64,000 nucleotides of DNA, taken from positions 62,001-126,000 of the forward strand of contig NIVC01001119.1 of NCBI GenBank assembly GCA_002269645.1, given 5' to 3'. This document shows, piece by piece, positions 11,201 to 14,200 of this stretch. Within the stretch, counting starts at the first letter, position 1; each line of letters begins with the position of its first letter. The position numbers were made by a program, and so were the translations under genes. Under the pieces are notes generated by a model. The model had not been told where the DNA came from. It made no database searches and saw nothing but the letters and a program-made list of their open reading frames with translations. The stretch is from Macrostomum lignano. Taxonomy: Eukaryota.

Positions 11201-14200
11201 ACTCACCGACATGAAATCCACGTGCAAAATAAAGAAGTGCAGCGACATTGACAGCACTATTGAGCCCATTAGCCAGATGTTTTTCCACGGTGGCATTTTG
11301 ACGAGAGACTGGTTCTCCGACAGGCTGAGAAAGTATGATGAAGCGCAGCAATTTAATTATCATATTAAATAAACTATGGGTGCATGCAACAGCAGCATCC
11401 GAGCAGACAAATGATTCTAAGAAAGCTTCTGACAGAATTTCGTGCTAAAAATAATTAACTGAAATGAATTCCAGTCAGGTAAAAAATGTCTACTAACAAG
11501 TATTGGTTAGGACAAGATGCTGTGTAGTTACTTTCAAAATGCAAATCAATATTTTCTGAGTTAGGGTGTTGGCGCCAATTCAAATGACAAAGAAAGATCA
11601 GCGATCCAAAGTGACAGTCTTGTCCTAACTCATAAGTTTTCTCCTGCTTTCTACAAATAATCAATTTCTGCTCGGATGAAATAGTCATGTTTTTGAACCG
11701 ACAGATATAAAATAATGAATAGGGTTATTAGATGAAGGAATTATTAATATATTTAAAACCGTCATTTAGCTAGCTATCTCTCTTTCTCAGTTGAAATGGC
11801 TTCGCCTAGCAGGGTAGCAGCATGCAATCAGTCGTCCGCCACATTTTAACAACTAAATTCACTGCAGATGTTTGTGGGGCATTGGGGCGGCATCATAAAC
11901 TACATCAAAGGATTGGGGTGGGGCAGCGGCGGCATCAAAAACTACATCAAAGGATTGGGGTGGGGCAGTGGCGGCATCATAAACTACATCAAAGGATTGG
12001 GGTGGGGCAGTGGCGGCATCATAAACTACATCAAAGGATTGGGGTGGGGCAGGGCGGCATCATAAACTACATCAAAGGATTGGGGTGGGGCAGCGGCGGC
12101 ATCATAAACTACATTAAAGGATTGTGGTGGGACAGCGGCGGCATCATAAACTACATCAAAGGATTGAGGTGGGGCAGTGACGGCATTACAAACTACATCA
12201 AAGGATTGGGGTGGGGCAGTGACGGCATCACAAACTACATCAAAGGATTGGGGTGGGGCAGTGGCGGCATCATAAACTACATCAAATGATTGGGGTGGGT
12301 CAGTGGCGGCATCATAAACTACATCAAAGGATTGGGGTGGGGCAGTGACGGCATCATAAACTACATCAAAGGATTGGGGTGGGACAGCGGCGGCATCATA
12401 AACTACATCAAAGGATTGGGGTGGGGCAGTGACGGCATTACAAACTACATCAAAGGATTGGGGTGGGGCAGTGACGGCATCACAAACTACATCAAAGGAT
12501 TGGGGTGGGGCAGTGGCGGCATCATAAACTACATCAAAGGATTGAGGTGGGGCAGTGGCGGCAACATAAACTACATCAAAGGATTGGGGTGGGGCAGTGG
12601 CGGCATCATAAACTACATCAAAGGATTTGGGTGGGGCAGCGGCGGCATCATAAACTACATCAAAGGATTGGGGTGGGGCAGCGGCGGCATCATAAACTAC
12701 ATCAAAGGATTGGGGTGGGACAGCGGCGGCATCACAAACTACATCAAAGGATTGGGGTGGGGCAGTGGCGGCATCACAAACTACATCAAAGGATTGGGGT
12801 GGGGCAGTGACGGCATCATAAACTACATCAAAGGATTGGGGTGGGACAGCGGCGGCATCACAAACTACATCAAAGGATTGGGGTGGGTCAGTGGCGGCAT
12901 CATAAACTACATCAAAGGATTTGGGTGGGGCAGCGGCGGCATCATAAACTACATCAAAGGATTGGGGTGGGGCAGCGGCGGCATCATAAACTACATCAAA
13001 GGATTGGGGTGGGACAGCGGCGGCATCACAAACTACATCAAAGGATTGGGGTGGGGCAGTGGCGGCATCACAAACTACATCAAAGGATTGGGGTGGGGCA
13101 GTGACGGCATCATAAACTACATCAAAGGATTGGGGTGGGGCAGCGGCGGCATCACAAACTACATCAAAGGATTGGGGTGGGTCAGTGGCGGCATCATAAA
13201 CTACATCAAAGGATTGGGGTGGGGCAGCGGCGGCATCATAAACTACATCAAAGGATTGGGGTGGGACAGCGGCGGCATCACAAACTACATCAAAGGATTG
13301 GGGTGGGGCAGTGGCGGCATCACAAACTACATCAAAGGATTGGGGTGGGGCAGTGGCGGCATTATAAACTACATCAAAGGAGTGGGGTGGGTCAGCGGCG
13401 GCATCATAAACTGCATCAAAGGACTGGGTGGGGCAGCTGACTGCAAAACCAACACTGCAAAGCCAGACGGGCCCAAAGTGCAGCGGTATATTAATGCTAC
13501 CTATTCATAGCGTTGCACATCTCAATGACCACAAGCACGCTGAGGGCCATGGTCATGGGCTTTGGGTGGGAGAATATAGCGCAGTCAATGCCTTCAAAGC
13601 GCGACTCCTGCGCGAGGCACTGAGCCTGATGTGTCTGGAAACGAACGGTGGAGAGGAAATTTAATTATCGAGTCTAAAACGCCTCACCTGTTCATTGCGT
13701 TGAACATTTCAATGAGCACTAGGACAGACAGGGCCATGGTCATCGGCTTGGGATTGTTGAATATCTTGCAGTCGATGCCTGCGAAGTTCTGCTCTTCGGC
13801 CAAGCACTGCATGTGGTGCGTCTGTAAGGGCGGCGACTCCGCGATTGAAGTAAGGAGACGGGCAGACAGACAGACAGACAGACAGACAGGCAGACAGACA
13901 GGCAGACAGACAGGCAGGCAGGCAGGCAGACAGACAGGCAGGCAGACAGGCAGACAGACAGGCAGGCAGACAGACAGACAGACAGACAGACAGACACAGA
14001 CACGACAGACACACACACAGACAGACAAACAGACAGACAGACAGACAGACACACACACAGACAGACAGACACACACACACACACACACAGACAGACAAAC
14101 AGACAGACAGACAGACACACACAGACAGACATACACTAAGACAGACAGACACTAAGACAGACAGACACTAAGACAGACAGACAGACAGACAGACAGACAG

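Follow-up and report, generated by a model that had tools for sequence, protein, structure and literature searches.

Exons 2 and 3 of alpha-tropomyosin are a steric-hindrance exon pair, and Drosophila Atpalpha, which encodes a Na+/K+-ATPase alpha subunit, has mutually exclusive exons. The Ca2+ pump SERCA has so far been a case of a different kind: its isoforms in Artemia, C. elegans, Pinctada and vertebrates (SERCA2a/2b) are produced by C-terminal splicing (PMC3527596; PMC6987452). In these papers, invertebrate SERCA isoforms are described as differing only at the C terminus, and the summary of Fan et al. 2007 given in one of them likewise reports C-terminal differences only (PMC6987452). Here we describe a SERCA gene of the flatworm Macrostomum lignano that carries two tandem versions, 8A and 8B, of an internal exon. 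The gene lies in a stretch of 64,000 nucleotides (contig NIVC01001119.1 of GenBank assembly GCA_002269645.1, positions 62,001 to 126,000), hereafter the window. We propose, with a probability of about 0.8, that 8A and 8B are mutually exclusive exons derived from a tandem exon duplication that occurred before flatworms, molluscs, annelids, nemerteans and brachiopods diverged, that the choice between them is regulated in M. lignano and that the switch tunes luminal regulation of the pump. A preliminary description, made from the sequence of the window, had suggested tandem duplicated exons with exclusivity forced by the reading frame; a second M. lignano paralog, sequences from five phyla and annotated isoform pairs in relatives now support this suggestion.

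Two versions of one SERCA exon

Exon 8A (window positions 13688–13821) and exon 8B (13501–13634) lie on the minus strand and are each 134 nt long, separated by an intron of 53 nt (13635–13687, minus strand; GTGAGG...TTTCCAG). Exon 8A encodes an A-type peptide (THHMQCLAE...IEMFN) that corresponds to residues 871–914 of SERCA1a, and exon 8B encodes a B-type peptide (THQAQCLAQ...IEMCN). Both are in phase 0/2, and each has its own YAG acceptor and GT donor. With a slash at each exon boundary, the sequence around 8A reads ...cccttacag/ACGCAC...GAACAG/gtgagg and that around 8B reads ...gtttccag/ACACAT...GAATAG/gtagca. A tblastn search of the window recovers exactly two copies (E ~1e-27 to 1e-29), and no third copy, decayed or intact, was found by tblastn over the 64 kb, even at E = 50.

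The two exons are identical at 96 of 134 nucleotides (72%) and at 33 of 44 amino acids (75%). Codon by codon, they differ nonsynonymously at 11 positions and only synonymously at 16 (15 in a second tally). Nine of the 11 replacements lie upstream of the PKPM motif, in a luminal loop, and the other two (L/V and F/C) lie in helix M8. The preliminary description holds on all of these points: two 134-bp exons at these coordinates with intact splice sites and equal phase, the peptide identity, the codon pairs TTG/CTC, TCT/AGC and CTA/CTT (all correct on recheck) and the concentration of differences in the loop. The splice junctions also agree with its shared donor at 15128 and shared acceptor at 11324. 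Its statement that the 53-bp intron is the shortest among the gene models of the window stands for the set that we compared, the 11 introns of the SERCA gene, in which the next shortest has 78 nt.

Because 134 = 3n + 2, exactly one of the two exons is needed to maintain the frame. Either exon alone leaves the SERCA frame open. That inclusion of both or neither would shift the frame had already been proposed, and frame reconstruction now places the resulting stops: an mRNA that contains 8A and 8B together reaches a TGA at positions 13555–13553, inside 8B, and an mRNA that contains neither reaches a stop within the penultimate coding exon (10048–9931).

Selection on both exons

M. lignano has a second, old SERCA paralog (L005, contig NIVC01000525.1), the exons of which are 83–93% identical in DNA to those of the window. 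Its introns no longer align with those of the window by blastn; in the interval from exon 7 to exon 9, the exception is the short A–B intron. The paralog carries the same pair, with A at 9018–9151, B at 9218–9351 and a 66-nt intron between them. Between the two loci, exon A has accumulated 15 synonymous codon changes and 1 nonsynonymous change (dN/dS 0.007; dS 1.4), and exon B has accumulated 19 synonymous and 0 nonsynonymous changes (dN/dS 0; dS 2.0), as estimated by the Nei–Gojobori method. In simulations, neutral drift of either exon on even one branch gives so few replacements at P <= 5e-5. Both exons are under strong purifying selection, as had been suggested from their codon differences, and conservation in five phyla bears this out.

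A near-identical copy of the locus (L006, NIVC01000206.1), ~95% identical including introns, also has both exons, with one synonymous change in each. The species has two SERCA lineages, separated by a dS of about 1.4–2.0 and with introns that cannot be aligned, and their split seems to predate the recent whole-genome duplication that has been described in M. lignano. The window-type lineage comprises several copies that are ~95% identical, introns included.

Age and distribution of the pair

Besides the window, two further M. lignano loci have A followed by B, each of 134 nt and with AG/GT sites. The same order occurs in the cestode Hymenolepis weldensis (134 nt each, A–B intron of 70 nt), in a Logan contig that, by its exon peptides, most resembles the trematode sequences of our set (89 nt), in the snail Biomphalaria pfeifferi (625 nt) and in the annelid Capitella teleta (122 nt).

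For ten species from five phyla, each represented by one genome, we compared the A and B exons. Pairing A with A and B with B outperforms cross pairing in all 45 species pairs, and the observed labelling of the exons is the optimum among the 1024 possible labellings. By this sequence comparison, A-type and B-type are separate orthologous classes across the five phyla, and the duplication therefore predates the split between Platyhelminthes, Mollusca, Annelida, Nemertea and Brachiopoda. A-type exons are slightly closer than B-type exons to outgroup sequences. Beyond Lophotrochozoa, our sampling comprised one arthropod locus and protein sequences: in the scorpion Centruroides vittatus there is only one copy, which is fused with the exon upstream of it, and the retrieved arthropod, nematode and vertebrate SERCA proteins have one exon type only.

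An environmental contig from an unidentified animal (L004; ENA ERZ23486757 scaffold_19920) has three tandem 134-nt copies with AG/GT sites (1144–1277, 2371–2504 and 2569–2702). All three are closer to A-type, and their number suggests a further duplication in some lineage.

Single genes of relatives use both exons in public annotation. We identified 12 distinct isoform pairs with matching flanks (identical or at least 97% identical over 400 amino acids upstream and 75 amino acids downstream) and with an exon 8 that differs by 9–18 residues. Examples include Littorina saxatilis X1/X2 (XP_070204858 / XP_070204859), Pomacea canaliculata (X1 versus X2, and X1 versus GenBank entry AYH91738), Schistosoma bovis (CAH8547307 / CAH8547290) and Trichobilharzia regenti (A0AA85KAQ8 / A0AA85KDA6), and pairs are also annotated in Haliotis, Crassostrea/Ostrea, the nemertean Lineus longissimus, the brachiopod Lingula anatina and Heterobilharzia. 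In total, such pairs are annotated in four schistosomatid genera. Both exon types are annotated in S. haematobium and S. rodhaini, and the S. japonicum entry C1LE79 is B-type. Environmental contigs of mRNA size (3.8–4.3 kb, with a full-length open reading frame) have either A or B joined directly to the next exon.

RefSeq and the schistosomatid gene models of GenBank (CAH entries) thus already contain the A and B isoforms of many species. The preliminary description was not aware of any account of this arrangement for SERCA, but the databases show that it is neither unique nor unseen. A published description of an internal SERCA exon pair was not found in the searchable literature, a search that did not extend to subscription-only papers.

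The L. anatina isoforms X2 (P0251) and X1 (P0095) also differ directly upstream of exon 8, with GTVIASGWWFMVYDKGPQLNWYQL in P0251 and another 24-residue segment in P0095. This difference hints at a second alternative exon pair in this species, which may cover M7.

What the switch changes in the pump

Aligned to SERCA1a, the alternative segment covers the second half of the luminal loop L7-8 and helix M8. The two loop cysteines correspond to Cys876 and Cys888, and the glutamate of M8 corresponds to Glu908, a residue of Ca2+ site I. All three are kept in both exons, in agreement with the preliminary description. Across both classes, Cys876, Phe883, Cys888, Phe891, Pro896, the MALS..LV core, Glu908 and Asn911 are invariant, and Asp887 is conserved in 19 of 20 exon sequences.

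The positions that distinguish the classes among the ten species pairs (SERCA1a numbering) are mostly in the loop. Position 873 is His in 10/10 A-type exons and Gln in 8/10 B-type exons; position 874 is Met in 10/10 and Ala or Ser in 10/10, respectively; and position 879 is Glu in 10/10 and Gln in 10/10. At position 880, A-type exons mostly have Pro and B-type exons have Asp or Glu; at position 893, A-type exons have Asn, Asp or Ala and B-type exons mostly have His; and at position 906, A-type exons have Thr or Leu and B-type exons have Val or Leu. As judged from these alignments, the conserved A/B change is one of titratable or polar residues right around Cys876, and not of Ca2+ coordination.

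The F/C contrast at position 910 is confined to M. lignano, and exon A of the paralog has Leu there. The preliminary description had the switch span both the L7-8 loop and M8: the loop around Cys876 and position 906 differ consistently across phyla, whereas the M8 difference at position 910 is lineage-specific. Phe910 (codon 40 of exon 8A, window positions 13704–13702; Cys910 in SERCA1a) occurs in the A exons of this M. lignano lineage, of schistosomatids, of the trematode-like contig and of a Clonorchis fragment. Position 910 is Leu in the M. lignano paralog, in cestodes and in other phyla.

The homologous cysteines of vertebrate SERCA2 are oxidised and reduced by the luminal enzymes ERp57, TMX1, ERdj5 and SEPN1, with effects on pump activity, and an interplay of the L7-8 cysteines with the alternative 2b tail has been proposed (PMC7603117). 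Although SERCA is one of the most intensively studied membrane pumps, the role of this large luminal loop and its cysteine pair is still debated (PMC7603117). By analogy, the most likely target of the A/B switch is luminal regulation and not ion coordination: the switch could alter how the loop cysteines respond to redox state or pH, or how a luminal partner docks. The two pumps would share their Ca2+ ligands and the disulfide and would differ in the luminal surface around Cys876, where the B pump would gain His893; A and B pumps may then be deployed in different cells, for which the preliminary description had suggested muscle and non-muscle as an example.

A broader version of this idea is that the switch is specific to lophotrochozoans, has lasted for more than 500 million years and, by swapping the residues that flank a regulatory luminal cysteine, provides different cell types with pumps of unlike luminal sensitivity (to redox state, pH or a partner), a diversification of SERCA for which vertebrates use separate genes. 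We offer this version tentatively, and regard it as possible but on balance doubtful.

Evolution has maintained two versions of the loop over several hundred million years while leaving the remainder of the pump as it is, and a swap of the 44-residue cassette would provide matched proteins for tests of the loop. A method for transgenesis of M. lignano has been published (PMC5730564), and exon-specific reporters may therefore be feasible.

How one exon may be kept exclusive

We attribute the A and B classes to a tandem exon duplication that preceded the split of the five phyla, and we hypothesize that in M. lignano the choice between them is regulated by cell type or state. The exon length of 3n + 2 is the sole feature of the pair that is conserved everywhere, and frame incompatibility is therefore the general safeguard. 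The frame shift itself can be read from the sequence; the further step, in which mRNAs with both exons or with the exon skipped would be removed by nonsense-mediated decay or would give non-functional products, is a prediction.

In flatworms, an A–B intron of 53–90 nt could additionally make splicing from A to B inefficient. Candidate branch sites, read by eye from the sequence, lie only ~22–27 nt from the donor in the 53-nt intron, a spacing through which steric hindrance may help to keep the exons exclusive in M. lignano. The preliminary description had suggested steric enforcement by the tiny intron as a possibility. It cannot be the general or the ancestral rule, because the A–B intron has 122 nt in Capitella and as many as 625 nt in Biomphalaria.

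Other splicing signals were also considered. U12-type signals (RTATCCTT) are absent from the donors, which are GTGAGC (exon 7), GTGAGG (8A) and GTAGCA (8B), and all acceptors are YAG. For docking and selector RNA pairing of the Dscam or 14-3-3 xi type, the interval 11325–15127 offers only two weak AT-rich inverted pairs. One of these, 13487–13502 with 11736–11751 (81% complementary), overlaps the 8B donor; we attribute it to chance, and the sequence of the 8B donor differs in the paralog.

Use of A and B in M. lignano

The annotation of M. lignano derives from RNA-seq transcriptome assemblies (PMC5730564). Among its GenBank models, exon A is found in every window-type copy and exon B in the copies of the paralog. 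The exon A peptide occurs in the transcript-derived models PAA72023.1 (P0193) and P0058, and the paralog transcripts P0059 and P0198 contain the same peptide as exon 8B of the window. Exon A does appear in one UniProt model of the paralog (A0A1I8HXM0). By exact look-up in a collection of 15 billion proteins, the B isoforms of both window-type protein variants and the A isoform of the paralog model P0059 are all absent, and a 90-amino-acid junction query matched no M. lignano fragments.

Several points weigh against a regulated switch with a luminal role at this locus. The exon-B product of the locus or of its near-identical copies is among the sequences missing from the protein collection, and the case for alternative use here is drawn from selection and from relatives. 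No conserved intronic docking or selector elements were found between exon 7 and exon 9 by blastn against the paralog or in the inverted-repeat scan of 11325–15127. The functional interpretation, in turn, draws on residue chemistry and on the literature on vertebrate SERCA2.

An alternative is that the paralogs divide the labour: the A pump would come almost exclusively from window-type genes and the B pump almost exclusively from the second paralog, with the other exon rarely or never used. All six window-type members of the protein cluster carry A, both GenBank models of the paralog carry B, and the missing exact B isoform of the window-type genes fits such a division. However, at a dS of 1.4–2.0 the exons that would then lie idle show the same constraint as those in use (0 nonsynonymous changes in 19 for the B exon of the window, and 1 in 16 for the A exon of the paralog), and their splice sites are all intact. 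In addition, the paralog model with exon A does exist, and species with a single gene use both exons in their annotated isoforms. We therefore consider a division of labour between paralogs unlikely, although it is the strongest competitor of regulated exon choice.

Far less probable is that one copy is a decaying pseudo-exon of a recent duplication, or an assembly artefact. Only A appears in the models of this locus, and the surrounding introns are rich in tandem repeats that could confuse assemblers. Against this, A and B differ at 38 of 134 nucleotides and are therefore not a recent copy, dN/dS is near 0, and a dS of 1.4–2.0 excludes gene conversion in the comparison with the paralog. Absence or decay of the second copy in relatives, which the preliminary description had said would count against the pair, is not what we find: three independent contigs of M. 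lignano have the pair intact, and it recurs in five phyla, in every case with 134 nt and AG/GT sites. Constitutive inclusion or skipping of both exons, yielding a truncated or altered C terminus with its own function, is hardly credible even though 8A is joined to 8B in several public models (P0060, P0255, Echinococcus P0067, S. margrebowiei P0205 and Hymenolepis P0039), because co-inclusion shifts the frame, stops 27 codons into 8B and loses M8–M10, and because these models rely on invented junctions, a frameshifted read or read-through open reading frames, as is typical of predictor error.

Automatic models mishandle the pair in several ways, by inventing internal junctions, by reading one exon in a shifted frame or by reading through so that both exons are joined. 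Affected models are P0060, P0252 and P0255 (M. lignano, UniProt), P0067 (Echinococcus multilocularis), P0205 (Schistosoma margrebowiei) and P0039 (Hymenolepis weldensis), and in Biomphalaria pfeifferi (L003) the SERCA gene is split at the exon pair into three gene calls. Because the pair repeatedly breaks automatic models, SERCA orthologs in flatworm and mollusc genomes need checking.

The SERCA gene and its introns

The host gene (locus Mlig008428g2) is complete on the minus strand, with a coding region from 24290 to 8266 and 12 coding exons when both alternatives are counted, as established by tblastn with SERCA1a and by splice junctions. It is a SERCA, a P-type ATPase of type IIA. Its exons span SERCA1a residues 1–994 by tblastn, and the C-terminal 244 amino acids align without gaps to residues 751–994 of rabbit SERCA1a (E 2e-120, the best match in the PDB). 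The product with exon A matches GenBank PAA72023.1 / UniProt A0A267FE99 (BOX15_Mlig008428g2) at 991 of 991 compared residues. The assembled protein contains TGES, DKTGT, GDGVND, PEGLP of M4 and NLVTDG of M6, with IEM(F/C)N in both alternative exons, and its close homologues have the Pfam domains PF00690, PF00122, PF13246, PF00702 and PF00689.

All exons are on the minus strand. Tblastn and splice sites define exon 1 (24173–24290, with the start codon at 24290), exon 2 (23994–24094), exon 3 (22893–23387, TGES motif), exon 4 (19927–20637, IPEGLPA of M4 and the DKTGT phosphorylation site), exon 5 (17376–17831) and exon 6 (16183–16543, GDGVND). Exon 7 (15128–15489) encodes M5–M7 and the first half of loop L7-8, and its donor at 15128 is common to 8A and 8B; exon 9 (11207–11324), with the common acceptor at 11324, encodes the end of M8 to M9. 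Exon 10 (9931–10048; M10 and KFVARKFTD) was placed by splice sites and a match to transcript models, and the last coding exon (8266–8294; VGQLPKEID and the stop) by a match to transcript models.

We rejected, as a further isoform, a C terminus that reads through the donor of exon 10 (window 9930–9880, a hydrophobic tail followed by a stop). The 95%-identical copy retains this tail, whereas the old paralog does not, and the transcript models continue with VGQLPKEID instead; it is probably not a real isoform.

Long tandem-repeat arrays with periods of 4 to 61 nt occupy 9 of the 11 SERCA introns, and are missing from the 78-nt first intron and the 53-nt A–B intron. They lie at 8349–8911, 9288–9849, 10565–11121, 11886–13436, 13863–14261, 14547–15040, 15635–16132, 16599–17330, 17834–18384, 19353–19875, 20681–21135, 21582–21832 and 23517–23923. 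Directly downstream of exon 8B is a 42-nt unit in 37 copies, and a (CAGA)n array of ~100 copies stops 42 nt short of exon 8A on its upstream side. In the RNA, arrays of this 4-nt unit read (UCUG)n; similar 4-nt arrays occur in two other SERCA introns, and they are therefore not specific to the alternative exons. Positions 1–6000 of the window show a strand asymmetry unlike the rest (GC skew 0.35–0.39, AT skew 0.27–0.30, GC 49–53%), which is probably another purine-rich repeat block.

Comparison with known systems

Tandem mutually exclusive exons are common in transport proteins, and the SERCA pair therefore changes no general concept. In its anatomy, it does not differ from the general class of tandem exclusive exons that combine frame incompatibility with nonsense-mediated decay: the exons lie next to each other, match in phase and in length (which is not divisible by three), have their own splice sites and are under purifying selection. 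What is new here is the gene, the segment and the lophotrochozoan span.

As in C-terminal SERCA splicing, one gene would give rise to several pumps, and the 2b tail also acts luminally. However, the tail is altered by optional exons or intron retention, whereas here homologous internal exons are swapped in L7-8 and M8. Like the alpha-tropomyosin pair, the M. lignano exons are separated by a very short intron (53 nt in the window and 66 nt in the paralog), here with candidate branch points only ~22–27 nt from the donor. The short spacing is not conserved: it is 70–89 nt among parasitic flatworms, and in Capitella and Biomphalaria it reaches 122 and 625 nt, respectively.

The exclusive exons of coq-2 in helminths, molluscs and annelids (PMC7434440) are comparable in being lineage-restricted yet deeply conserved, in affecting a short functional segment of a membrane protein and in the phyla that they share with the SERCA pair. 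The gene and its chemistry are different, and the functional consequence was shown experimentally for coq-2, whereas the SERCA pair is known from sequence. In the exclusive exon clusters of muscle myosin heavy chain, one gene likewise produces tissue-specific variants by swapping homologous exons (PMC3912159). The same applies to the Na+/K+-ATPase alpha subunit of arthropods, for which splice variants in a barnacle are indicated by a reference cited in PMC6987452 and which is also a P-type ATPase. Both myosin and Na+/K+-ATPase differ from SERCA in the segments and lineages concerned, and at the single arthropod locus that we examined the SERCA pair is missing.

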